64,000 bases of DNA from Macrostomum hystrix (lineage: Eukaryota > Animalia > Platyhelminthes): positions 1,984,001 through 2,048,000 of the forward strand of contig CATNEN010000010.1 in the NCBI GenBank assembly GCA_950097015.1, given 5' to 3'. The notes below the pieces were generated by a model. It was not told the origin of the DNA. It saw nothing but the letters and a program-made list of their open reading frames with translations, and made no database searches. How positions within the stretch are numbered: position 1 is the stretch's first letter; every line of letters begins with the position of its first letter. Below, one piece after another: positions 3,001 to 36,814 of the stretch. A program made the position numbers and the translations under genes.

Positions 3001-6000
3001 TTAAAAATTAAATGTCTAATGCGTGAGAGTTAGTCAATATTGTCGAGGCATAAAGAAACTGGCTTACTGGTAGTAAATACATGCTAGAGTGCTATTCGTG
3101 TTTAATCCACTGCAGAATTTATAAATATACTTCGAGTCTTAGTACTTTAGAAGTTAATCTATCGCGAACAGTTTAAATTGATGTTTTTAGCGATTTGAGT
3201 AAAAATAAAAAACTGCCATCGCTTCAAAAAATGCTCGCAACGCACTAATAAAGTAGTTGTGAAGGCAAACTTACCAGAAAATGCAATCCGCCTTGAACCA
3301 GTGATTCACTTTACTAGCTGACTCCACATCCAGCTGATTCCATTCAGGACCGCTGAGGTGTTTGCGAGGTGGTGGACTCAGTGAAAAGACACTAGCCTCA
3401 GTGAAGGGACAGTAGCCTCAGTGAATAGACAGTAGCCTCAGTGAAGAGACAGTAGCCTCAGTGAAGAGACAGTAGCCTCAATGAAGGGACTGTAGCCTCA
3501 GTGAAGAGACAGTAGCCTCAGTGAAGGGACAGTAGCCTCAGTGAAGGGACAGTAGCCTCAGTGAAGGGACAGTAGCCTCAGTGAAGGGACAGTAGCCTCA
3601 GTGAAGAGACAGTAGCCTCAGTGAAGAGACAGTAGCCTCAGTGTAAGGACAGTAGCTTCAGTGAAGGGACAGTAGCCTCAGTGAAGAGACAATAGCCTGA
3701 GTAGCCTCAGTGAAGGGACAGTAGCCTCAGTGAAGGGACAGTAGCCTCAGTGAAGAGACAGTAGCCTCAGTTTAAGGACAGTAGCCTCAGTGAAGGGACA
3801 GTAGCCTCAGTGAAGAGACAGTAGCCTCAGTGAAGAGACAGTAGCCTCAGTGTAAGGACAGTAGCTTCAGTGAAGGGACAGTAGCCTCAGTGAAGGGACA
3901 GTAGACTCATTGAAGGGACAGTAGCCTCAGTGTAAGGACAGTAGCTTCAGTGAAGGGACAGTAGCCTCAGTGAAGGGACAGTAGACTCATTGAAGGGACA
4001 GTAGCCTCAGTGAAGAGACAGTAGCTTCAGTGAAGAGACAGTAGCCTCAGTGAAGAGACAGTAGCCTCAGTGAAGAGACAGTAGCCTCAGTGAAGAGACA
4101 GTAGCCTCAGTGAAGGGACAGTAGCCTCAGTGAAGAGACAGTAGCCTCAGTGAAGAGACAGTAGCCTCAGTGAAGAGACAGTAGCCTCAGTGAAGGGACA
4201 GTAGCCTCAGTGAAGGGACAGTAGCCTCAGTGAAGGGACAGTAGCCTCAGTGAAGGGACAGTAGCCTCAGTGAAGGGACAGTAGCCTTAGTGAAGGGAAA
4301 ATATACTATTGACAATAGACCCCAATCTTACCCGTCTCGCCAGGGCCCCAGCCATTCGCTGCCGTCATGGAAGTGAGCAGTCTGCAGTTTGAGCAGCCAG
4401 ACTCGAGTGCCGTCCTGCAATTGCACCGGCTGCACATCAGTCAGCAGGTAGCCGCGGCCATAGACTAAATTCTCCGAAGTGCGGTCGCCAGTTTGCTTCC
4501 CTTTTCCTTCGGGCTAATTAAAAGAATGCAGGAATAACGAGAGGGAGCATAGACAATAAGCGATGGCCGTTTCTCGCTTGTACACCATCGCGACCAGTCT
4601 ATATAACCAAAGCCAAAATTCATCAAATCAGGATGCACATTGTTTATTCTCTATTTTTAAAACAAAGAATGTCTCTTATGTAGAAAACTCTGTTTAAAAT
4701 ATTCCGAGCGGAAAAAATCCAAGAGCTCTTTTCCATTTGATCCACGGCGCTCCCCGCCGCTGCTTTGGTAATCAAGCCCGCCCGGACCGTCAAAGAGCGT
4801 CGAAGGGAGAGAGAAAAGACGGGCCCAGACCACGGAAGCAGACGAGCCAGGCTGCAGAGGCAAAGAGAAGCTGATTTGGGCGGCATCTGAGGCCTGGGGC
4901 AGCGGGTTGGGATGGCCGCCATGGAGAATGTAATTTAATTTTCTCGAGAATTTAATCAGCCCGCGTCGAGGCCGGGTGCCAGGCTGAAACAAAAAAGGCG
5001 TTCTGTCTCTGTAGGCAAGCCCCCCGGCTTCCGGCGAGCCGCGAATCTGCCACGAAGGCGGGGTGGCTGCTGAGAAGGCGGCCCGCTTTCCAGCCTGGCG
5101 CCGTTTCAATTTTTTTGCTCAAAAAATGTTGAATTCCTAGCGCCTGCTCCGCAGAAATTTATTCAGACGCAATAAAGTCTTTACAGAATCGTTGCTGCGT
5201 TTTACAATTTTTATATGTATTACCCGCATTCGGGGATAAAAATACGATTAATTAAATGGCACTCGCAGATGACAGCAATGACAGCAGAACAAACCCGAGT
5301 GCTGAACAGCAGCAGCCCGTCCCTGCGCACGTGGCACTGCAATATGCGGGCTAGACGCTCTCGAGCGTCCGGGTTGGACAAGTCCACCTGGCCCTGCAGC
5401 AGCCGCAGGTCCCAGTGGTCAGGGATGCCTCGGCCGAAGCTGGCGACGGCGTCGGCCACGCGTCCGTGGGCGAGAGATGCATAGCCGCCATGCAGCCTGT
5501 GCAGACGAATTAAAAAGCAAAAAATAGAAACGTTTTTCATTCTCTTTCCGTTTTCCTCTGTTATGTGGTATACGGTCGCATCGTAGTAATGCATACGCTG
5601 GCTTTGAAGATCGAACATAAAAATACTGCCTAAAAGGAGAGAAAAACACTAAACATTTGAAAAATTCCGTTTCTAATGATTCACATGACTGTCAACTACA
5701 TACTCGCTATCTACTCAAGAAATCTACTAGTATTCATGGGGTAAAATTTGCTAGTCCTATATACTAAATCACAGGATCAGATACGTCTTACGATCCACAA
5801 TCGTACGAGCTACAAGTTCGCTAGCCAGAAAATACAAAGGGATTTGCTCTGCCTGTCGCGTGTTTCCACACTCTCACTTGGCGTAGGCCTTCTCCAACAA
5901 GGCGCTCCAAAACTCGGCCCCGTCCTCCGACCGGCAGCGCAGCAGCTGACCGTCCCTCGCTGGCAGACGATCGTCCACCACCACCTCGTAGACGCGACCC

Positions 6001-7227: not shown

Positions 7228-7560
7228 GATAGATAACTCTCCTCTCCTCTCCTCTCCTCTCCTCTCCTCTCCTCTCCTCTCCTCTCCTCTCCTCTCCTCT
7301 CCTCTCCTCTCCTCTCCTCTCCTCTCCTCTCCTCTCCTCTCCTCTCCTCACCTCTCCTCTCCTCTCCTCTCCTCTCCTCTCCTCTCCTCTCCTCACCTCA
7401 CCTCACCTCTCCTCTCCTCTCCTCTCCTCTCCTCTCCTCTCCTCTCCTCTCCTCTCCTCTCCTCTCCTCTCCTCTCCTCTCCTCTCCTCTCCTCTCCTCT
7501 CCTCTCCTCTCCTCTCCTCTCCTCTCCTCTCCTCTCCTCTCCTCTCCTCTCCTCTCCTCT
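7228..7560. repeat. (CTCCT)n microsatellite
   Basis: Near-perfect 5-mer run. Confidence 0.99.
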
Positions 7561-8084
7561 CCGCTGGCTGTTTGACCAGGATTTCAAATGCCACATGAGC
7601 TCTGGAGGTCAATAGTGGAATTGAGCACGACAAGAGGAGGCCGAATTCGCACGCTCCCCAGCCTCCAATATTCTCCGCAAACAGGCCGCAACAACGTTCG
7701 CAGCCTCTAAACTGGCCCTTCTATCCCCACCTTCCCTCTGCCTCCTGGGTGGACTCACTGCCAGTCTCTGCGCGACATCGATATGCGGCTTGCACTCGCA
7801 ATACAGCGACAAAGTAGGGCCCGCTCAACTAAGCCTTCTCAACTAAGCTTGGCTTTTTGCCCATTGCTACACCTCTCGCCCGCTGCATTCGCAGCTCGAA
7901 CACCTTCGAGTGACCTCAGCCGCTGCCTCGGTTGCCCCCTCATAAATAATAATTATCACTGGCGCTTTATTTTCTCTCATTCAGCAATTTCTTTCTCCGC
8001 TCTGCTCGTAAACTAAAAGTATCTGGTGTACTCTCTGTGCTTCTTCACCTTCTCCGAGTTACATATGCGAACTCCACAATCTAC

Positions 8085-8440
8085 CTCACCCTCTCACTGT
8101 CCCTCTCCCTCACCCTCACCCTCACCCTCTCCTTTTCCCTCTCCCTCACCCTCTTACTCACCCTCACCCTCTTACTCACCCTCACCCTCTTACTCACCCT
8201 CACCCTCTTACTCACCCTCACCCTCTTACTCACCCTCACCCTCTCCCTCTCCCTCACCCTCTCCCTCACCCTCTTACTCACCCTCACCCTCTTACTCACC
8301 CTCACCCTCTTACTCACCCTCACCCTCTTACTCACCCTCACCCTCTCCCTCTCCCTCACCCTCTCCCTCACCCTCTTACTCACCCTCACCCTCTCCCTCT
8401 CCCTCACCCTCTTACTCATTCTCTTTCTCACCCTCTCCCT
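8085..8440. repeat. (ctcacc/ctctcc/ctctta)n pyrimidine-rich repeat
   Basis: 6/18 bp periodicity. Confidence 0.95.
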
Positions 8441-8543
8441 CATTCTCGCAATCCCCTCCCCCCCTGTGCCCTATTTTATCTCTCTTCCCCTCTTTTCCCC
8501 TTCCCACTAAGCTTACATCTTCCTTCCCTTCATTTCTCGGCAC

Positions 8544-8688
8544 TATCTTGTCTTCCATATCTCACATGGCAAGGGCGGCGGTTGCATTTAATATCTTGTC
8601 TTCCATATCTCACATGGCAAGGGCGGCGGTTGCATTTAATATCTTGTCTTCCATATCTCACATGGCAAGGGCGGTGGTTGCATTTAAT
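8544..8688. repeat. 48 bp unit x3
   Basis: tatcttgtcttccatatctcacatggcaagggcggcggttgcatttaa at 8544, 8592 and 8640. Confidence 0.95.
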
Positions 8689-8859
8689 GAACGGATTTAA
8701 AAACTCGAAAACAACAAGTTGTCTTGCGCCACTGGGAGAGAAACAAGCTGAGCTCCTTTGGAGGCGGCCTCAGAGATGCCACACTGAGGGACCCAGTAGC
8801 TAATTAGATACTTCCCCTCAACCTTTCTTCTCCGAACCATTTCTTCCCCTCACACTTTC

Positions 8860-9730
8860 TTCCCCTAACCGCTCCTTCCCCTCACCCTTTCTTCCCCTCA
8901 CCCTTTCTTCCCCTCACCCTTTCTTCCCCTCACCCTTTCTTCCCCTCACCCTTTCTTCCCCTCACCCTTTCTTCCCCTCACCCTTTGTTCCCCTCACCCT
9001 TTGTTCCCCTCACCCTTTGTTCCCCTCACCCTTCCTTCCCCTCACCCTTCCTACCCTCACGCTCCATTCCTCTCACCTTCCTTCCCCTCACCTTCCTTCC
9101 ACTCACCTTCCCTCCCCTCACCCTTTCCCTCCCCTCACCCTTTCCCTCCCCTTACCCTTTTCTTTCCCTCATCCTTCCTTCCCCTCACCCTTCCTTCCCC
9201 TCACCCTTCCTTCCCCACACCTTCCTTTCCCTCACCCTTCATTCCCCTCACCTTCCTTACCCTCACCCTTCCTTCCCCTCACCCTTTGTTCCCCTCACCT
9301 TCCTTACCCTCACCCTTCCTTCCCCTCACCCTTTGTTCCCCTCACCCTTCCTTCCCCTCACCCTTTGTTCCCCTCACCCTTTTTTCCCCTCACCCTTCCT
9401 TCCCCTCACCCTTTGTTCCCCTCACCTTCCTTTCCCTCACCCTTCCTTCCCCACACCTTCCTTACCCTCACCCTTCCTTCCCCTCACCCTTTGTTCCCCT
9501 CACCCTTCCTTCCCCTCACCCTTTGTTCCCCTCACCCTTTTTTCCCCTCACCCTTCCTTCCCCTCACCCTTTGTTCCCCTCACCCTTTTTTCCCCTCACC
9601 CTTCCTTCCCCTCACCTTCCTTACCCTCACGCTCTATTCCTCTTACCTTCCTTCCCGTCACCCTTCCTTCCCCTCACCCTTTGTTCCCCTCACCCTTCCT
9701 TCCCTTCACCCTTCCTTCCCCTCACCCTTC
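8860..9730. repeat. Polypyrimidine minisatellite (ccctcaccctt(c/t)(c/g)ttc)
   Basis: Degenerate ~18 bp units, almost exclusively C/T on the + strand. Confidence 0.95.
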
Positions 9731-10072
9731 CTTGAAAATCTTACTTTCATTCTACGCGATGTTCCCGGCTTTAAGTCATTTCTGGCAAGTCGGCGTCGAA
9801 TGTTCGGGGAGGTGGAGGTTCGCGAGGACGGCCTCGGGAACTGCTGAGCTGCCGACCCAGCCTACTCAAATATCACTCACCTATATCCCAGCCATGTCAG
9901 GCCCTGCACTGTGCGTTGGATAAACACTTCTGAGTAGACTGTCATCCACGGTGAGGCAACTCATCTTAGCGGGATGGGGAGCTCGCGGAAGCTGGCGACT
10001 CGGGTAACCCGAGGCCTCCTTCCCAAACAAAAGATGAGGCCACGACTGAGGCTTGGCAGAGCACAGGAAACA

Positions 10073-22635: not shown

Positions 22636-23029
22636 CTTAGAAAAATAGTTTAACTAACAATTCGAGACCAAGGCAGAAAATGCTATATTCTAAACTTTAA
22701 ATATTCAAATTCTACTTTTTAAACATGTAAATTGTATTTCCTCTTTTATTTCATTTCAGATCTGGTTGCCTTTCCTCTCTACAATGTGTAATTCTTCACT
22801 GATGACTAGCTATCTTAGGGTAGCAAGTTTACAGTAACAGTGTCTTACTATTAACACATTTTCTAGCTTAATGATTTTTGTTAATTGGTGCTAATCTTGC
22901 AAAAAATTTATTGTTTTACTCGAGCATGCACTGATCAATTATACACAAATTTCGAAATGTTTTCAGAACTGCATTCTTTGTTGGTTTTCTTCTTCGTTTT
23001 GCAATGACAGTGACTCACTAAAGTCTGAG

Positions 23030-23740
23030 GGAGTGCCTGAATAGAGACCGAGGGAGTGCCTGAATAGAGGCCGAGGGAGTGCCTGAATGAGGGCTGAGAG
23101 AGTGCCTGAATAGAGACCGAGGGAGTGCCTGAATGAGGGCTGAGGGAGTGCCTGAATGAGGGCTGAGGGAGTGCCTGAATGAGGGCTGAGGGAGTGCCTG
23201 TATGAGGGCTGAGGGAGTGCCTGAATGAGGGCTGAGGAGTGCCTGAATGAGGGCTGAGGGAGTGCCTGAATGAGGGCTGAGGGAGTGCCTGTATGAGGGC
23301 TGAGGAGTGCCTGAATGAGGGCTGAGGAGTGCCTGAATGAGGGCTGAGGGAGTGCCTGAATGAGGGCTGAGGAGTGCCTGAATGAGGGCTGAGGGAGTGC
23401 CTGAATGAGGGCTGAGGAGTGCCTGAATGAGGGCTGAGGAGTGCCTGTATGAGGGCTGAGGAGTGCCTGAATGAGGGCTGAGGAGTGCCTGAATGAGGGC
23501 TGAGGGAGTGCCTGTATGAGGGCTGAGGAGTGTCTGAATGAGGGCTGAGGGATTGCCTGAATGAGGGCTGAGGGAGTGCCTGAATGAGGGCTGAGGGATT
23601 GCCTGAATGAGGGCTGAGGGATTGCCTGAATGAGGGCTGAGGGATTGCCTGAATGAGGGCTGAGGGAGTGCCTGAATGAGGGCTGAGGGATTGCCTGAAT
23701 GAGGGCTGAGGGAGTGCCTGAATGAGGGCTGAGGGATTGA
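23030..23740. repeat. 22-23 bp minisatellite (gcctgaatgagggctgag(g)gagt)
   Basis: About 31 copies. Confidence 0.97.
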
Positions 23741-24638
23741 CTAATGTGATGAAAATGGCTTAAATTCTGTGTTTTCACCATGTGGCACTGAAGTATATAC
23801 ATTTGTTCAGTATTTTTTTGTTTTTTTCCGACTGCGCTCCTTCCTCGTGTGATGCTAGATTTTCCCAGTGCTGCCTATTATTTTCCCATTTTAAAAGAAT
23901 CCAAATTTTGAAATACATAATATACGGTCTATTCTGCTAATGGTGCTAATTGATCTAATGAAATCGTGGTATTTTCAGTCGGCTAGTTTTTCATTTTTCC
24001 ATATGCTTACTTTTTTATTAAGCGTAAAAACACATAAAAATATTCTTGATATTAACGAAAGTTCTAAAATGCTATGCTTGCTACTGACAGTAGAGTATGA
24101 AAGTAAATGAAACCGAAAATTCAGCGTTATTCTTGGCTATGACAAAGGTAGTTTTAATTAAGCAATAAAACATTATCGTTGGGCGATGATGCAGTTATTG
24201 AATGACCACCAGTTTAGTAGTCCTTGGCCGTTCGCTTGGTTGTCAAAGTTTGTATCGGGAGCAAAGAATACAGATTTCTGTATCTCATAATCTGCACTTC
24301 GATAGCACACCGCATAATTTCGCTTATTTTTCATGTACACTTTCAATTAAATATTACTAAATTATTACTTTTGATGCTGGCTCCGGGCAACTAGTCGGCT
24401 CTAATAGTACACGCAGTGCATCATGTAGTGTGCATCATAACTATGCAGTCTCTTATCTGCTCCTTGGCGTTGAAGCGAAAACAAAATAGAAAATTTTCGA
24501 TTTCGCAACCTAGTCGCCTCCAGCTTTGGGCCTGACGTAATTGTTATTTTAGGGGCAAATAATGTGTGTGCCATTTTTCTTTCTCTTGTCGAGGTAGATG
24601 CGGCTCACTGTTCTAAAAACGGCCCTGTTTTTTTGCTT

Positions 24639-24985
24639 GGAAATTCTTGGAAATTCAGAACGATAACTGCGTGATTTTAACTTGGAAAATCCAAGCTAAA
24701 TTATTGCTGCCTTGATGACGTCGACCTTCTGCCATCCAAAAATAACTGGATAAACAATCGAGTACTCAGAACTGCTCATAAAACTGCAGCCCTACACACT
24801 TGAACTGTTCGTCCAATGGTGTGCATTACAGTTTCCTGGCACTAGCCGATCCCAAGGCTACAGACATGTGTACAGCACGCCCTGCCGACAATTGAAGCTG
24901 CGTCAGGTCTAAAATTGGCGCCCAAACCGAAAACGAAAATGCTGCAGACAACGCCTTCCAACCGACCGGCCGCTGCAGTATAAAA
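24639..24985 (+). promoter_or_regulatory. Promoter of UBL-fusion gene 1: GAS-like, Rel-family-like, IRF-like and TATA elements
   Basis: TTCTTGGAA 24644-24652; TGGAAATTC twice; TTGGAAAATCCAAG 24682-24695; GAAAACGAAA 24929-24938; TATAAAA 24979-24985. Confidence 0.5.
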
Positions 24986-25085
24986 ATGGGAGCCCTGTCT
25001 GCAGCGGCACTAACTCAAACCACTGGCAGAAGGCTTTATATTTGATCTAGAAGTCTGTTAGCTTTAGCTTAGATAGCTTAGAACT

Positions 25086-25574
25086 ATGAGCCCTCAGCAG
25101 CAGCAGTTGATCCGGAGTGCCATCGCCAGCATCGCTAACGGTGACGCTGGTCGTGGTCAGCAAAACTCGGCTTCAGCCGAAGCCCAGCTTCGTAGAGCTC
25201 AGGAGCTTCACGCGGAGCTCAGCAGCGGCGGCCGGCAGCGCCCCGGCCTGCTCACTGAGGCCGAGACCGTCGCGCAAAATTACCTAAGGCTCGTTGGCCG
25301 ACTGGCGCCCAACGAGAGCCTCCGGGACAATTTGACTGTAAGGATCCATGGAACGGACGGTCGGCCTCGTGAGGTCATTGTGCCTCGGTGGGAGACCGTC
25401 CAGTATCTGCAGAACCAGATGGGTCAGGTTGGTGGACTGATCCTGGGCGGACGTCCGCTGGCTGGCGAGACACTAGTCTACGACTTGTGGCTGCGCGATC
25501 AGCTCGGTAGCCTGACCGTGGCCAACAATCAGCAGCCTAGGATTCAAGCCACTGTGCGCAACACAGCTGGCTGA
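25086..25574 (+). CDS. Helical (MIT-like?) domain plus C-terminal ubiquitin-like domain, paralogue 1 (162 aa, intronless)
   Basis: The C-terminal half aligns to the ubiquitin fold (LTVRIHGTDGR..ETVQYLQ..LILGGRPL..IQATVRNTAG*). Roughly 40% identical by eye to 28053-28556. TATA box ~100 bp upstream. Confidence 0.85.
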   Translation: MSPQQQQLIRSAIASIANGDAGRGQQNSASAEAQLRRAQELHAELSSGGRQRPGLLTEAETVAQNYLRLVGRLAPNESLRDNLTVRIHGTDGRPREVIVPRWETVQYLQNQMGQVGGLILGGRPLAGETLVYDLWLRDQLGSLTVANNQQPRIQATVRNTAG

Positions 25575-25944
25575 GTGCGTTTCTTGAGCGAAAAGACAAT
25601 TTTTAAGATTTGTGCAGGCACTCCTTGGTTTGTGTGTAAATATTTTATCACGGCCGTGAGACACTGACAGGTAGGCTGGGTAAAAATGGTTCATTCTTTT
25701 AACAACTAGCTCTCCACCTGCCCTGTTCTCCGCATCGATTCGATTGTCGAGCAAAAGTTTGGCGTCCCGACTCAGTCAGTTAATCCAGCTGATTTAATCG
25801 GGTTTGTCTAAACTCAATGGAAATATTTTAGCCAACTTTGATATCCAGACAGGAACAGTTTCCTCATATTTTGTCAAGCTTTCTCTCTCGCTGAAAAAGC
25901 CAAGAAAACACACTTTTAACCTGATATTTATGACGAAATTTTAC

Positions 25945-26740
25945 CAGTGACATTTTACCAATTAAGAAAGCAATCTAATTTTGCATCCGGCGAGAGAGCA
26001 AGCTGGTCTGGCCCTGCAGTGCGGCACCCCCTGTGGCTGCGGCCATCGATCGATTGGAGAATAAGGCAGCGGGAGAGCAGTTCTTAGAGAATGAACCATT
26101 TCCAGTAGAAAGGCTCACAAGTCCTCTGGGTTCTTCATCCGCCCCTCTCCGCTCTCCATCCGCCCCTCTCCGCTCTTCATCCGCCCTCTCCGCTCTTCAT
26201 CCGCCCTCTCCGCTCTCCATCCGCCCCTCTCCGCTATTCATCCGCCCCTCTCCGCTCTTCATCCGCCCATCTCCGCTCTCCATCCGCCCCTCTCCGCTCT
26301 TCATCCGCCCCTCTCCGTTCTCCATCCGCCCCTCTCCGCTCTCCATCCGCCCCTCTCCGCTCTCCATCCGCCCCTCTCCGCTCTTCACCGCCCTTCTCCG
26401 CTCTTCATTCGGTCGTTTCCATCCGTTAACGGACTGATTTTATGGACAAAAGTTCAATATTTTAAGAAAAAAGCATCGCATGTAGCTCGTAGACTGTTTG
26501 ACGCGACCAAGGACGTGACTGCGCGCTGAGAAAAGAAACGAACTGACCTAAAGTATCGATTAATTATCGGCCTTTAATTTTGAAAGAACTATATATTCTG
26601 CCACGAGCAGGTTATTGATTGATTACAAAATTTATTTATCCCGCTTTCGCTGCGCGTCGCCTCCGGGGCTGCCGCGCGGTGCAGCGCCAGACCTGCTTGC
26701 TCTCTCTCGCCCGATTCAATTTAAATCGTTTCTTAACTAT
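25945..26740. mobile_element. MITE-like element with inverted arms enclosing a 21 bp minisatellite
   Basis: ggcgagagagcaagctggtctggccctgca (~25989-26018) is the reverse complement of tgcagcgccagacctgcttgctctctctcgcc (~26680-26711). Similarity extends to the ttaagaaa / tttcttaa flanks. Confidence 0.6.
26130..26405. repeat. 21 bp minisatellite (catccgcccctctccgctct(t/c))
   Basis: About 13 copies. Confidence 0.96.
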
Positions 26741-27289
26741 TAACAGCGGCTAATAAAATCTTTTTGTAATATTGATTGATCATATTTATTTACTGTAATT
26801 TCAAAAAAAAAATAATTCAACAAAATTCCGTGCACTGAATCTCTTTTGCTAAACTTTAATTTATCCAAATATTCAAGTCTATTTTTCTGCATTAACCTGT
26901 ACCGCTTTAGAACTGCAATGAATCCCACAATAAAAAACTAATTCCTAATATAATATCGAAGGCTTTCTGTTTGTTACAAAGGCAAAATGACGCTTTTTCA
27001 AATTTTCTATAAAATTTGGAATACTAAGCAACATGAAATTCAAAAATAGCAATGAGCTCATTGCTGCTGCGTACTTTTTAGCTGTGCACACAAGTTTCCT
27101 CTTTTGCTTTTTACTCATTTTAACGGCCAATGGTGCAGAGAAAGAAGGAAAGTTGAAAAAAGTCACTAATCGTAGAAACATCGGATTAGTGACTTCTCTT
27201 GTTTTGTACATAACAGAAATTTAATATTTCACCTGATCTAATTTGGGCCAGATTTACAGTCGACAGGATAGAAATTGCGTGACGTATCT

Positions 27290-27490
27290 GCAGTCTGCGT
27301 ACCGCTGTTCAGTCCATGGACTGGGCCACAACCACCCTTAATAATACTGGCACCCAATAAACAGCTGAATGAACTGATTGTCCGTGTCTTGCTAAAGGAC
27401 ACAAATTGTTCTATGGGAGTCGGGAATCGAACCCCCGACCTATAAGTCCCGAGTCTGACGCTCTTATTACTAGCTAGGCTACTAGGCCGT
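27290..27490 (-). mobile_element. tRNA-derived SINE, copy 3
   Basis: Head ggcctagtagcctagctagt..., B-box gggttcgattccc, core tgtgtcctttagcaagacac, 3' ccagtccatggactgaacag. Confidence 0.78.
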
Positions 27491-27645
27491 AGGGCTCTCT
27501 AAAATTTCTCTAAAATTTGAAGAAATAGTTGGAAGTTTGGCTTAAAAAACACGCATATACTTGAAAAGCACAAAAAACTGAATCTCATTGAAACTGGCAT
27601 ATCTTTGATGCGTTTGTGATGCTTGCGTGCTTGTTAGGGAAACAT

Positions 27646-27956
27646 TTCTTAGAAAAGTATGAGAAACTGCAGTTGCAGTTTAGCAAGAAAAACTTTCTGG
27701 GGTTTATGCAATATTCTAAATTAAGGTCATTAGACCTTAGAAACAATGAGTCGTTGATATTTTTAGGAAATCAAATACTGCTGTTTTTTGGAAAATCCAA
27801 GTCAAAACTTGTGCTCTGCAATGTACTCGACAATCTACTCTGCCTTCCAAAGCTCGAATCTCGTACGGCTACGACGGCTGCAACAGTCGGTGTGACGTTG
27901 TCGCTAAATTTGGCCCTTAAACCGAAAATTTTGACGCGAACCGTCGGTTATAAATA
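27646..27956 (+). promoter_or_regulatory. Promoter of UBL-fusion gene 2
   Basis: TTCTTAGAA 27646-27654; TTGGAAAATCCAAG 27788-27801 (identical to gene 1); ctaaatttggcccttaaaccgaaaa 27904-27928 (homologous to 24909-24933); TATAAATA 27949-27956. Confidence 0.5.
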
Positions 27957-28052
27957 CGTGCATGCTGAGAGCTGATTCAGTGTGAGATGCAAGGCTTCCA
28001 AGCCAAGTTAGAACTCGGATCAAGTCAGCAATCAACTCCTTCTACATCGAAC

Positions 28053-28556
28053 ATGAGCCAGCGCGAGAATATTCTTATCCAGCGGGCCCTCGAAAGCATT
28101 GCAGACGGCAGCGCAGCCGCTGGAATGCCGCTGAGCCAGCCGGAAGCAGAGGCGAAGGCGCGGGAGCGAGCGAAGGTACTGCATGCGGAGCTCCGACGCG
28201 GCGGTCCAGTGAGGCCCGGTCTGCAGAACGATGCCGTCACAACAGCTCAGAGCTACCTAGAACTCATGGGGCATCTTGCGCCTTCGGAGAGCTTGCTGGC
28301 AGAAATGCAGTTCAAGGTGCGCAGAATCGACGGAAGAGAAGAGAAGTTCTCAGTGCTCCGTTCAGAGACGGTTGGCCAGCTCAAAAAGCGAGTCGAAGGC
28401 GCCAGCGACGGTGGCTTCGGCTTCATGTTGCTCGGCAAGCCGCTGACCGACGATGCTCAACTGGTGTACGACCTGTGGCTGCTGAAACGTCTGGGCAGCC
28501 GGACAGCTCAGAACCCGCCCTGGGTACAGCTCACTGTGCGCAGCTCTGCCGGATGA
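28053..28556 (+). CDS. Helical (MIT-like?) domain plus C-terminal ubiquitin-like domain, paralogue 2 (167 aa; in-frame upstream ATG at 27987)
   Basis: MQFKVRRIDGREEKFSVLRSETVGQLKKRVEG..LLGKPLTDD..VQLTVRSSAG* aligns with ubiquitin [50 protein letters not shown]. Confidence 0.87.
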   Translation: MSQRENILIQRALESIADGSAAAGMPLSQPEAEAKARERAKVLHAELRRGGPVRPGLQNDAVTTAQSYLELMGHLAPSESLLAEMQFKVRRIDGREEKFSVLRSETVGQLKKRVEGASDGGFGFMLLGKPLTDDAQLVYDLWLLKRLGSRTAQNPPWVQLTVRSSAG

Positions 28557-30708: not shown

Positions 30709-31809
30709 ATGGAAAATGAAACGCTGAATGCGACAGGTGCGCCGGACTACGAGGGGCCGCCACCGTGGTATTTTGACGCCGGTTGGAACCTGTTTGTGCG
30801 CGGCGCCTTCTCCTGGCTGTTCCCAATCTTTGTGCTAACGGGAGGCATCCTGAACGCAGCCTGTTTTATAGTTACTGCCGCCAACAGGAAGTCGTTTCCA
30901 AGAAACAGCCGGCTCTACATGTTACTCATCAGTGCTAATGACACTGTACTCCTGCTAGTGAAGGGGACCATCTACTACTTTGACGTCATGGGTACCCTGG
31001 TGACGGATCCCTGGCCCTGGTACAAACCTGTGCGCAGTTTGAACGCACCGGTAATGCGAATCTATTATATAATGTCCTACATGACAATGTTCGGGGCTCC
31101 GTTCTTCCAGCTAGGCCTCACGGTGGACCGAGCTGTCGCTGTTTGCTTTCCGTTGAAGGCTAAGCAGTTGATGAATCGGCGAAACAGTGCCATCTTGCTG
31201 GCTATTGTCTTGATCCTGGTCATGTCCTTCCCCATCTTGACAATCTACCTTATCCAGTTTGACCCAGTTCTTGGCGTCACTGTGGTGGCTGACGACCTCT
31301 ACTATGATTTCTATACGCAGTACGAGCTCTACGTCGGACGGCTGATGCTGGCGGCCCTGCTGATAATTGGCACTGCGCTTATCTGTGTAATGCTACTTCG
31401 CAGCGCCCGCGGCCTCGGCGAACCCAGCGGTGGCGGCGACGACAAACGAAAGGCTCGCGCCATCAGGCTGAGCCTAGTGCTGGTCATTCTGAATCTGAAT
31501 TTTATGCTGTTCACGCTGCCTTGGAGTCTGGCCAGTGCGGTGGAAACTTTTCACCTGATCGACTGGGTACCCCAGGCTCAGAGGGACAGAATGTTCGAGT
31601 GCTTTAATGTGCTGTTGTTTCTGAACAGCGCTTGCAACTGGATCGCCTACTTCATGGGCCAGGGATTTCGCAACAACTTCGTCGCCACGTTTCGGCTTGA
31701 CCGCTGCTGCTGCGTCGGCTCCATGGGCGGCAACAGCGGCAGCCGCGGCGGAGGACGCACCGGATCGACATGGAAGACAACGAGCTCAATGGCCGTTACC
31801 GCTAACTGA
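30709..31809 (+). CDS. Orphan class A (rhodopsin-family) GPCR, peptide/chemoreceptor-like, intronless CDS
   Basis: Seven hydrophobic segments; TM1 GILN, TM2 ISANDT, TM3 LTVDRAVAVCFPL, TM6 FTLPW, TM7 NSACNWIAY; N-glycosylation sequons (NET, NAT); C-tail CCC. Confidence 0.93.
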   Translation: MENETLNATGAPDYEGPPPWYFDAGWNLFVRGAFSWLFPIFVLTGGILNAACFIVTAANRKSFPRNSRLYMLLISANDTVLLLVKGTIYYFDVMGTLVTDPWPWYKPVRSLNAPVMRIYYIMSYMTMFGAPFFQLGLTVDRAVAVCFPLKAKQLMNRRNSAILLAIVLILVMSFPILTIYLIQFDPVLGVTVVADDLYYDFYTQYELYVGRLMLAALLIIGTALICVMLLRSARGLGEPSGGGDDKRKARAIRLSLVLVILNLNFMLFTLPWSLASAVETFHLIDWVPQAQRDRMFECFNVLLFLNSACNWIAYFMGQGFRNNFVATFRLDRCCCVGSMGGNSGSRGGGRTGSTWKTTSSMAVTAN

Positions 31810-32500: not shown

Positions 32501-33974
32501 GGAATCTAATTAATTATTTGTGGTCAAATAGCCGTTTATGAATCAAATGTATCAAAATACAATTATTTGGGGCGCACCGCAGCCACGGAGAGAAGGCTTG
32601 GAGGCTTGTCGTGCAATGTACGCCATTGAGGGTCAACCACCAAGGCACAGTGAGAGTGTACGCTGCCTGACGATGAATATGTAGGCTACATGCGTGTGTA
32701 CTCTGTAGTGAGCGAAATGAGTAGAATTTCTCCCTCGCTAGGTCAACTGTCTGACACCAGAAGATGTGCCGTTACCCGCAGCCTCCTGTAAATATTATTA
32801 TGACCTGGGAAATAAGCACTTTTCTAAACTCCAGACAATAAATTCTAAATCAGAAACGGTGGGGTTGGAAAGGTCAAAGTCGATCTTGTGGGGCGGGGCC
32901 TGGCACAAACGAATTCTGTTGCGTCACTGCAGACTCGCGGGCTCCCACCACTTCCTGTTTAACAGACATCTGTCTACTGTGACCCCACCACTCGCGAGCC
33001 TCCCATTCTCCACTCCTTCAGTGTCCAAATACTCTTTGTTCTTGATTTCGGATCTACAAGATCTCTTTGTCCGAGCACCCACTAAGTCATCGCTTATTCT
33101 GTTAGGCCGTGTAGATTAAGATTCTTATAACTGAATCAAGGCTGGCAGACAGGTTTCTTCTGATATCTAAAATCTACCTGCACGTGCGAATAAAAGCAGA
33201 AAAGTGCTCGACTTCCTTGCCTTTCCTTTGGCTGTAATACGCAACTGTCTAAGCTTGCTATTTATTCACTTGATGCATACCCAATTGTATGAACGATACA
33301 CGCGTTCAGCACAACATTACTTTAAAGGATTTTAAACTGTTTAAACAGAAAATTATTAGTTTATTGCTGAAACTTTCGGGATGACCCTGGCAGCAAGCAT
33401 TTCATAAGCGCAAATCAATTTGCTGCTTGCTTTGACGAAAACTGAGCTAGCTGTGTTATCATAAACATTGAGCTGGCCACCCACACAGGACAGTCGCACT
33501 GGTGGGAGATTTGAGTCGAGCTCAACAACAAGAACGTGATGCGGAAGACACGGGTGGGCAATGGGAAAAAACAAACTCACACCGATAAGAGCCGAGCAGA
33601 CGGGGCAACAGACTGGACCGGACCACACAGGCAGAATGTCATCCTTGCTGGGACAGACAGACAGGCTTAAAGTACATAAAGACTGGCGGATAAACAGTTA
33701 CCTGGAAGATAAGAAACCATGAGGGAACCAGAACAGACACTGGCTTGGTTTCTAAGCTGAAGACCCAGACAGACACTGTGGGAGTCGACACGCCAATTAC
33801 AAAACAAAGCAAGCAACGTCAAGAAATTTAAAATGGTATAAGAGGAATAGCACAAACTATAAAATAATAACAAGGCGCAAAATAACAGGAGCCATTAATT
33901 GGAAAGCTGGCAGTTTGGTTTATAAGCGAATACTAAAAATACGAGCAGTAAGATAAAGAAATCTGGGACATGAA

Positions 33975-36075
33975 AGAGGGAGACAGATGAGAGAGGGGCA
34001 GATGAGAGAGGGGCAGATGAGAGAGGGGCAGATGAGAGAGGGGCAGATGAGAGAGGGGCAGATGAGAGAGGGGCAGATGAGAGAGGGGCAGATGAGAGAG
34101 GGGCAGATGAGAGAGGGGCAGATGAGAGAGGGGCAGATGAGACAGGGGCAGATGAGAGAGGGCAGATGAGAGAGGGGCAGATGAGAGAGGGGCAGATGAG
34201 AGAGGGGCAGATGAGAGAGGGGCAGATGAGAGAGGGGCAGATGAGAGAGGGGCAGATGAGACAGGGGCAGATGAGAGAGGGGCAGATGAGACAGGGGCAG
34301 ATGAGAGAGGGGCAGATGAGAGAGGGGCAGATGAGACAGGGGCAGATGAGAGAGGGGCAGATGAGAGAGGGGCAGATGAGACAGGGGCAGATGAGAGAGG
34401 GCAGATGAGAGAGGGGCAGATGAGAGAGGGGCAGATGAGAGAGGGGCCGATGAGAGAGGGGCAGATGAGAGAGGGGCCGATGAGAGAGGGGCAGATGAGA
34501 GAGGGGCAGATGAGACAGGGGCAGATGAGAGAGGGCAGATGAGAGAGGGGCAGATGAGAGAGGGGCAGATGAGAGAGGGGCCGATGAGAGAGGGGCAGAT
34601 GAGAGAGGGGCCGATGAGAGAGGGGCAGATGAGAGAGGGGCAGATGAGACAGGGGCAGATGAGAGAGGGGCAGATGAGAGAGGGGCAGATGAGAGAGGGG
34701 CAGATGAGACAGGGGCAGATGAGAGAGGGCAGATGAGAGAGGGGCAGATGAGAGAGGGGCAGATGAGAGAGGGGCAGATGAGAGAGGGGCAGATGAGACA
34801 GGGGCAGATGAGACAGGGGCAGATGAGAGAGGGGCAGATGAGACAGGGGCAGATGAGACAGGGGCAGATGAGAGAGGGGCAGATGAGAGAGGGGCAGATG
34901 AGAGAGGGGCAGATGAGAGAGGGGCAGATGAGAGAGGGGCAGATGAGAGAGGGGCCGATGAGAGAGGGGCAGATGAGAGAGGGGCCGATGAGAGAGGGGC
35001 AGATGAGAGAGGGGCAGATGAGACAGGGGCAGATGAGAGAGGGGCAGATGAGAGAGGGGCAGATGAGAGAGGGGCAGATGAGACAGGGGCAGATGAGAGA
35101 GGGCAGATGAGAGAGGGGCAGATGAGAGAGGGGCAGATGAGAGAGGGGCAGATGAGAGAGGGGCAGATGAGACAGGGGCAGATGAGACAGGGGCAGATGA
35201 GACAGGGGCAGATGAGACAGGGGCAGATGAGAGAGGGGCAGATGAGAGAGGGGCAGATGAGAGAGGGGCAGATGAGACAGGGGCAGATGAGAGAGGGCAG
35301 ATGAGAGAGGGGCAGATGAGAGAGGGGCAGATGAGAGAGGGGCAGATGAGAGAGGGGCAGATGAGACAGGGGCAGATGAGACAGGGGCAGATGAGAGAGG
35401 GGCAGATGAGACAGGGGCAGATGAGAGAGGGGCAGATGAGAGAGGGGCAGATGAGACAGGGGCAGATGAGAGAGGGCAGATGAGAGAGGGGCAGATGAGA
35501 GAGGGGCAGATGAGAGAGGGGCAGATGAGACAGGGGCAGATGAGAGAGGGGCAGATGAGAGAGGGGCAGATGAGAGAGGGGCAGATGAGACAGGGGCAGA
35601 TGAGAGAGGGGCAGATGAGACAGGGGCAGATGAGACAGGGGCAGATGAGAGAGGGGCAGATGAGACAGGGGCAGATGAGAGAGGGGCAGATGAGAGAGGG
35701 GCAGATGAGAGAGGGGCAGATGAGAGAGGGGCAGATGAGAGAGGGGCAGATGAGAGAGGGGCAGATGAGAGAGGGGCAGATGAGAGAGGGGCAGATGAGA
35801 GAGGGGCAGATGAGAGAGGGGCAGATGAGAGAGGGGCAGATGAGAGAGGGGCAGATGAGAGAGGGGCAGATGAGACAGGGGCAGATGAGAGAGGGGCAGA
35901 TGAGAGAGGGGCAGATGAGAGAGGGGCAGATGAGAGAGGGGCAGATGAGAGAGGGGCAGATGAGAGAGGGCAGATGAGAGAGGGGCAGATGAGACAGGGG
36001 CAGATGAGACAGGGGCAGATGAGAGAGGGCAGATGAGAGAGGGGCAGATGAGAGAGGGGCAGATGAGACAGGGCA
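33975..36075. repeat. 15 bp (occasionally 14 bp) purine-rich minisatellite (gagaggggcagatga), 2.1 kb
   Basis: About 140 copies; source of the 716 and 730 aa spurious ORFs. Confidence 0.99.
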
Positions 36076-36814
36076 GTGGGCAAGCATTAGTAATTTAAGC
36101 GATTAAGACGAACACACATAATCATATACAGATAATACAGTGGCATGGCAATGCGGTACAATGGTAATTAAATTGAAACAGATGCCAAACATGTTGTTCG
36201 CGCCACACGACACAGCGCAAGTCGTGATGCAACACGCTGATATGTGTTACACATCCGCGTGGTAACCGGACACGACTGACCTTTCCCGTTGTACCAGCGC
36301 CCGACCCCGCGAGTGAGCAAGCGAAACTGAAAGCTGTGGTAACCTGACACCAAAGCAGCTGAAGACTGTAATCGCATCGATGCGAATTCTGACACCTCCG
36401 CCACCGCCACTGCCCGCAGCCGGGGAGCGGCGTGAAAAGTCAACAGAAATTTTCACCTGAGGATCGAGAAATTCGATCTCATGACGCTTGCACACTTTGT
36501 TGTTAGTAGCATCCAAACTATAACTCAATACGCATTGCATATAGTTCGCAGAGTATGAACGAAAGCGGAAATATGAGAAGCGATATCTGCTTTTTTATAA
36601 TGAACAGCTGTCAAAGTCGCAGATAATACCTAGTGAGCAAAGAGTTCCCTTGGTTACGTATTCACTCAGTCCGTTATTTGACATCAGTCCATCAAATCAA
36701 TGCCATTTTCGCTTTCATTTTCATGATCAGCGATTAGCAATTAGCATTAAACTGAGGGATAACTAGACTTGAATTATCTAATTGACTACAAGGGGCAAAG
36801 TGGGGCCGGGGCGC

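Follow-up and report, generated by a model that had tools for sequence, protein, structure and literature searches.

Paralogous Macrostomum genes encoding candidate ubiquitin-like modifiers with a three-helix head and an invariant terminal glycine

The gene pair and its relatives

A 64,000-nucleotide (nt) stretch of DNA from the flatworm Macrostomum hystrix, called the window here, carries two paralogous open reading frames (ORFs) in tandem on the + strand, each encoding a small protein with a C-terminal ubiquitin-like (UBL) domain and Gly as its last residue. Gene A (25086–25574) is a single exon encoding 162 amino acids (aa) with the tail IQATVRNTAG-stop, and the full ORF of gene B (27987–28556) encodes 189 aa with the tail VQLTVRSSAG-stop; both are present as an earlier note, made from the letters of the sequence alone, had described them. 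The ATG at 27987 is an in-frame upstream ATG of gene B. Because all relatives begin at the position of Met23, and because the contigs described below start at 28002 and 28014, downstream of the 27987 ATG, translation of gene B most likely starts at Met23 (28053). The coding sequence 28053–28556 (+) then encodes 167 aa, comprising a three-helix domain and a ubiquitin-fold domain with an Ala-Gly-stop end. The two proteins are 45% identical by BLASTP (E=7e-36) and 48% by MAFFT; they are thus the diverged paralogues that the note had recognized, at an identity slightly above the roughly 40% it had estimated by eye. Similarity between the genes at the DNA level is restricted to the coding parts and one short promoter block, and tblastn found no further copy of the family in the window.

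Four public sequencing runs from two studies (X2, X9, X10 and X11; run kind unrecorded, coverage RNA-like) contain contigs from the pair. Run X2 has one 1139-nt contig over 25027–26165 and one 876-nt contig over 28014–28889, both with zero differences from the window, and run X9 has contigs over 25038–25620, 28002–28265 and 28300–28471. Gene A is also covered by contigs of X10 and X11. The promoter stretches 24300–24915 and 27534–27995 yielded no contig from any of the four runs. The contigs are colinear with the genome and show no joints within either ORF, in keeping with the description of both genes as intronless. This is the coverage that transcripts would give, and we therefore infer that A and B are expressed as unspliced mRNAs. 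The longer X2 contig carries the 3' untranslated region of gene A (25575–26165, +) at least as far as 26165. A minisatellite lies downstream of gene A at 26033–26437, reads as SPL(S/F)IRP repeats on the + strand and GEGRM(E/K)S on the - strand, and is probably inside the 3' untranslated region of gene A; the contigs of all runs break there.

A profile search with A and B over 1.84 billion representative proteins returned three relatives, all from Macrostomum lignano: two full-length ones (E=4e-50 and 1e-47) and a weaker one (3e-8). The remaining matches were multi-UBL proteins of diatoms, plants and other organisms, aligned over the UBL part only, with E down to 1e-13. The M. lignano A-type protein (PAA58157/PAA83748) has 160 aa, three copies and the tail TVRNAGG, the B-type (PAA58158/PAA53219) has 167 aa, two copies and the tail TGNYGG, and the C-type (PAA62498/PAA59051) has 189 aa, the tail GRCGSG and an intron at the domain junction. 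In M. lignano the A and B genes are again single-exon and in tandem, in the same order as in the window (5001–5483 and 7457–7960 of locus L001; L003 likewise). Identity is 64% between window A and M. lignano A, and 51% between window B and M. lignano B. From these orthologous tandem pairs and their identities, the two species are judged deeply diverged and the A/B duplication older than their split. The first intron of the C-type gene (L002 6120–6760) holds a long (SIYL)n microsatellite, and P0024, the WormBase-derived model of this gene, is frame-scrambled and carries the UniRef mislabel 'Integron gene cassette protein'.

Wider searches returned nothing beyond this genus. An eight-sequence family profile found nothing further in an index of 5.8 billion clusters, and the C-type query found only its own cluster and the M. 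lignano gene model P0024. A word-indexed protein search with gene B was empty, because gene B and its relatives have no 5-residue words in common. The exact sequences of the window proteins are not in the protein collection. No relative was found in IMG/VR viral contigs or in metagenome contigs, and BFVD gave generic viral UBLs only. No published description of the family turned up in literature searches on its locus tags, accessions and subject; the deposited names of the M. lignano proteins are 'hypothetical protein' or 'Ubiquitin-like domain-containing protein'. The family has so far been seen only in Macrostomum flatworms.

Both domains of A and B are under purifying selection: omega, the ratio of nonsynonymous to synonymous divergence, is 0.26 for the N-terminal domain and 0.28 for the UBL between A and B, with synonymous divergence (dS) saturated (Nei-Gojobori). 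The amino acid composition is skewed as well. Gene A encodes no lysine, no cysteine and 17 Arg, and cysteine is absent from the A/B proteins generally. Lysine/Arg counts are 1–2/17–18 in M. lignano A, 2/21 in M. lignano B and 8/15 in window B, and other coding ORFs of the window have lysine-to-Arg ratios of 0.36–0.84 at similar GC content. The A-type proteins and M. lignano B are therefore 'lysine deserts'.

A helical head on a ubiquitin fold

Single-sequence AlphaFold2 prediction of gene B was poor, with a predicted local distance difference test score (pLDDT) of 56, and was replaced by a model of gene A built with the eight-sequence family alignment (pLDDT 88.4; predicted template modelling score, pTM, 0.81). 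In this model, residues 1–81 (25086–25328, +) form a three-helix domain (helices 3–17, 29–46 and 55–69; pLDDT about 90), matching the helical N-domain of about 80 aa that had been proposed from the sequence. Residues 82–162 (25329–25574, +) are modelled as a beta-grasp ubiquitin fold ending Ala-Gly-stop. Because the pTM is high, the model suggests that head and UBL form one body.

The assignment of the C-terminal half was supported by two structural searches. Foldseek against the PDB placed ISG15, NEDD8, the UBL of DC-UbP, SUMO and ubiquitin in the lead, with a TM-score by target of 0.75 and a root-mean-square deviation (rmsd) of 2.3 for the C-domain of ISG15. VIA-align, over 48,161 chains, gave a Z of 9.6 to both the ISG15 C-domain and the ubiquitin-like protein TINCR, and one of 8–9 to the ubiquitin, SUMO, parkin and Rad23 UBLs; these matches (Z 8–9.6) span 66–72 residues at rmsd 1.7–2.5. 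Sequence profiles pointed the same way at lower significance. The family profile matched only UBLs in the PDB (best ISG15, E=0.003), the single sequence of gene B matched best the UBL of DC-UbP (1ttn, E=0.045), and Pfam PF00240 scored gene B at 17.8 bits (E=0.0028), below its gathering cut-off of 25.4, with no match for gene A. By model and fold comparison, then, the C-terminal half genuinely adopts the beta-grasp fold of ubiquitin, as the earlier note had expected; a prediction lacking the beta-grasp, which would have counted against it, did not occur. Foldseek also aligned Atg5, the LUBAC core and RIAM with the model over 130–167 columns, but at rmsd >10 and with a TM-score no better than for the UBL alone, and these were rejected as matches to the whole protein.

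For the head, sequence searches gave no such relatives. Scans of five N-domains gave no Pfam match at E<=10, there were no PDB profile matches at E<=10, and the atlas gave no usable match. The N-domain had been likened to MIT, which would have linked it to ESCRT-III; this reading found no sequence-level match in the Pfam, PDB profile or atlas searches, and we have dropped it as unsupported. A and B are small cytosolic proteins in which an orphan three-helix N-domain is packed compactly on a C-terminal ubiquitin fold.

What could such a protein do? One possibility is that of a non-conjugated adaptor, whose helical head would bind a client and whose UBL would dock non-covalently on the proteasome, a chaperone or a partner that binds ubiquitin. 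Most often UBL domains end up in such a role, and the pTM of 0.81 points to a fixed two-domain body. The best single-sequence PDB match of gene B, moreover, is the C-terminal, non-conjugated UBL of DC-UbP/UBTD2. The family resembles UBTD1/UBTD2 (DC-UbP) in having a non-UBL N-domain followed by a UBL near the C-terminus, and the DC-UbP UBL is in the Foldseek list. Unlike UBTD/DC-UbP, it has no match to the UBD domain (PF16455), and the gene B match to 1ttn is weak and covers the UBL only. UBA, UIM and BAG domains were likewise without a Pfam match in the family, which speaks against an adaptor.

The terminal glycine and its tail

The proteins stop directly after NTAG in window A, SSAG in window B, NAGG in M. 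lignano A, NYGG in M. lignano B and CGSG in M. lignano C. The terminal Gly is invariant in these five lineages, including all copies of M. lignano A (3), B (2) and C (3), and is among only 20 of 162 columns that are invariant across them; variation of this residue among relatives was looked for and did not occur. The four A/B genes encode it as GGC, GGA, GGA and GGC. Between the two species dS is 1.2–1.8, that is, saturated, at an omega of 0.18 for A and 0.38 for B. Given this saturation and the use of different Gly codons, these comparisons indicate that the terminal Gly is held by selection and not by shortage of time.

The rest of the tail varies within limits. The residue preceding the terminal Gly is A in two of the five lineages, G in two and S in one, and is thus always small. 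The earlier note had also claimed conservation of the equivalent of ubiquitin Arg72, which holds in four of the five lineages and fails in one. M. lignano A and B end in Gly-Gly, M. lignano C in Ser-Gly and both window genes in Ala-Gly. The nearly identical sequences of X10 and X11 bear the labels of other organisms; they come from close relatives of the window species and carry the adjacent changes 25567 C>G and 25568 T>C, which turn Ala161 of gene A into Gly and so create a Gly-Gly end there too.

Where the chain ends was assessed on the model. Residue 162 aligned in VIA-align with residue 76 of a ubiquitin variant and of the parkin UBL, residue 97 of SUMO1 and residue 154 of bovine ISG15, each of them the last aligned residue of its UBL chain. 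The protein therefore stops where those UBL chains stop, and the proposal that the UBL ends where ubiquitin ends is upheld by the alignment of residue 162 with residue 76 of the ubiquitin variant. The last residues of the model have a pLDDT of about 48, as a free tail would give. The tail is accordingly modelled as flexible, with 4–5 small residues, and ends in an unprocessed Gly.

How does an adaptor fare against this tail? The diglycine is not retained in the window copies, as an adaptor would allow; its terminal Gly would merely be the end of a short flexible tail, and lysine depletion would shield it from ubiquitination. An adaptor leaves unexplained, however, why the stop comes right after an invariant Gly at the equivalent of ubiquitin Gly76 in five lineages at saturated synonymous divergence, and why the residue before it is always G, A or S. 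We consider an adaptor a substantial possibility, though one that we would not expect to prevail.

Alternatively, the Gly could be activated by an E1-like enzyme for a chemistry different from attachment to protein lysines, such as conjugation to lipid as in ATG8 or formation of a thiocarboxylate as in URM1 and MoaD. ATG8 has helices at its N-terminus that pack on the ubiquitin core, ATG12 requires no processing, and for ATG8, ATG12 and UFM1 a single terminal Gly after a non-Gly residue suffices for E1 activation. The family recalls ATG8 in its helical N-terminal extension on a UBL with a single C-terminal Gly, and URM1 and ATG12 in its unprocessed Gly or Gly-Gly end; the invariant Gly, in a tail at the UBL chain-end position, would suit such chemistry too. 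The likeness to ATG8 is limited: its N-terminal extension has about 25 aa and two helices, whereas the N-domain here has about 80 aa and three helices. ATG8, ATG12 and UFM1 are not among the fold matches listed, and Gly-Gly occurs in three of the five family lineages, unlike in those proteins. The leading fold matches are UBLs of the ISG15, ubiquitin and SUMO type, not ATG8, URM1 or MoaD, and those pathways are ancient and universal whereas this family is confined to one genus. Other chemistry thus seems improbable.

Shared promoters, candidate function and surroundings

The promoters of the pair have a common layout. Upstream of gene A lie, all on the + strand, a palindromic site resembling the gamma-activated sequence (GAS), TTCTTGGAA, at 24644–24652; GGAAAATCC at 24684–24692; a conserved 25-nt block at 24909–24933, whose core resembles the interferon-stimulated response element (ISRE) and sites of interferon regulatory factors (IRF); and a TATA box, TATAAAA, at 24979–24985, which is 107 nt before the ATG and is followed by the starts of the RNA-like contigs at 25027 and 25038. 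Upstream of gene B, also on the + strand, are the GAS-like TTCTTAGAA at 27646–27654, GGAAAATCC at 27790–27798, the 25-nt block at 27904–27928 and a TATA box, TATAAAT, at 27949–27955, 104 nt before the Met23 ATG.

The block emerged from a four-way alignment of the gene A and gene B promoters with both M. lignano promoters, where it lies at L001 4869–4893 and 7297–7321. In the A and B promoters of both species it reads CTAAAnTTnGCnnnnAAAyCGAAAA and lies 117–162 nt before the ATG; it is conserved although synonymous sites are saturated between the species. In the window this pattern occurs only at the two promoter sites, with 0 expected, and L001 has two matching places. The M. lignano core, GAAATCGAAAA, fits the ISRE/IRF pattern GAAAnnGAAA; a literature search yielded nothing on IRF or STAT in flatworms. 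Palindromic GAS-like TTCnnnGAA sites and TTCNNNGAA are each present in 5/5 family promoters, and GGAAAATCC in 4/5, against a frequency of 0.02 per 500 bp in the rest of the window.

Could the ORFs nevertheless be non-functional: products of chance, pseudogenes, or fragments of a virus or mobile element? They are short, intronless and lineage-restricted, and repeats flank them (26033–26437 and 27226–27533). An omega of 0.18–0.38, the tandem order kept in M. lignano, the transcript-like contigs, the confident predicted fold, the conserved promoters and the lack of any relative in viral or metagenome contigs all argue to the contrary, and we regard this explanation as barely credible.

Tentatively, and at a little short of an even chance, we favour reading the family as a lineage-specific modifier of the ubiquitin-like kind, with the architecture of ISG15 and FAT10 and activation at its terminal Gly. 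Like FAT10, URM1 and ATG12, the modifier would be made ready to use: after adenylation of its terminal Gly by an E1-type enzyme, it would be transferred to targets in full, together with its helical head. Having almost no lysine, the A-type proteins would be protected as tags from chain extension and from being ubiquitinated. The elements that the promoters have in common (a GAS-like site, GGAAAATCC, the ISRE-like block and a TATA box) suggest joint induction of A and B by a transcription factor that responds to a signal, perhaps during stress or an immune response. The beta-grasp fold, a correctly placed terminal Gly that is invariant and unprocessed, and the flexible tail of small residues are all features of such a modifier, and the A and B proteins are good, if unproven, candidates for a new Macrostomum-only protein tag.

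Like ISG15 and FAT10, the family has its conjugating-type UBL at the very end of the chain, preceded by an additional N-terminal domain, and its promoters have an ISRE-like core and GAS-like sites. The C-domain of ISG15 is its best match by both sequence profile and fold, and like FAT10 it has no propeptide to remove. Unlike in ISG15, the front domain is a three-helix bundle and not a second UBL, the tail is VRNTAG, VRSSAG or VRNAGG instead of LRLRGG, identity is 15–20% and the distribution is limited to Macrostomum.

Several observations weigh against a modifier. Both window copies end in Ala-Gly and not Gly-Gly, and the equivalents of ubiquitin Leu73 and Arg74 are absent. With only five lineages, all of one genus, few independent events stand behind the invariance of the Gly. 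As the earlier note had remarked, there is no E1, E2 or E3 gene in the window: no such domain was found in its 18 larger ORFs, nor was an E1, E2 or E3 found within 10 kb of the pairs in M. lignano, a lack that would fit an adaptor. No conjugate, thioester or cognate E1/E2 of A and B was seen in this sequence-based work. The identity of the transcription factors behind the promoter motifs is a guess from short motifs. Most UBL-domain proteins are not conjugated, and lysine deserts have also been described for non-conjugated UBL shuttle proteins.

In a bolder form of the modifier reading, which we think unlikely, macrostomids would have independently invented an inducible, lysine-poor, ready-made tag in the style of ISG15 and FAT10, with a three-helix effector head. 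It would be under STAT/IRF-type promoter control, as are vertebrate interferon-stimulated genes, and an E1-E2 pair would attach it to host or pathogen proteins.

The list of ubiquitin-like modifiers is short, and the discoveries of SUMO, NEDD8, ISG15, UFM1 and FAT10 each opened a field. If A and B are conjugated, a helical cargo domain can be delivered covalently, and the recent birth of a modifier could be followed together with its traceable cognate E1/E2. If they are not, the family would neatly illustrate how a free C-terminal Gly can be under strong selection for some other purpose. The conserved promoter layout also gives access to the study of signal-dependent transcription in flatworms. 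Since transgenesis is possible and RNA interference works in M. lignano, the family is a concrete candidate that is cheap to test.

Neighbouring ORFs in the window encode a rhodopsin-type G-protein-coupled receptor, a RhoGEF, a WD40 propeller, an Ank-SAM protein and an Argonaute PAZ exon. The receptor gene (30709–31809), 2.1 kb downstream of gene B, is a single exon of the rhodopsin family encoding 366 aa (7tm_1, E=7.5e-10). Between A and B, 27226–27533 is a high-copy repeat with an X2 depth of about 700 and many contigs, joints and loose ends. With its T-arm-like GGGAATCGAACCCCCGAC on the + strand it may be a tRNA-derived short interspersed element; ARAGORN found no tRNA gene in it. Upstream of gene A, 22963–23802 is a long imperfect tandem array with a 279-aa repetitive ORF on the - strand built of PQPSFRHSSALIQAL units, and is probably a non-coding satellite. 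Two further regions of the window, 33895–36087 and 8000–10000, are extremely skewed in strand composition (GC skew +0.72 and -0.68, respectively) and contain long repetitive ORFs, one of them with an extensin-like low-complexity match.

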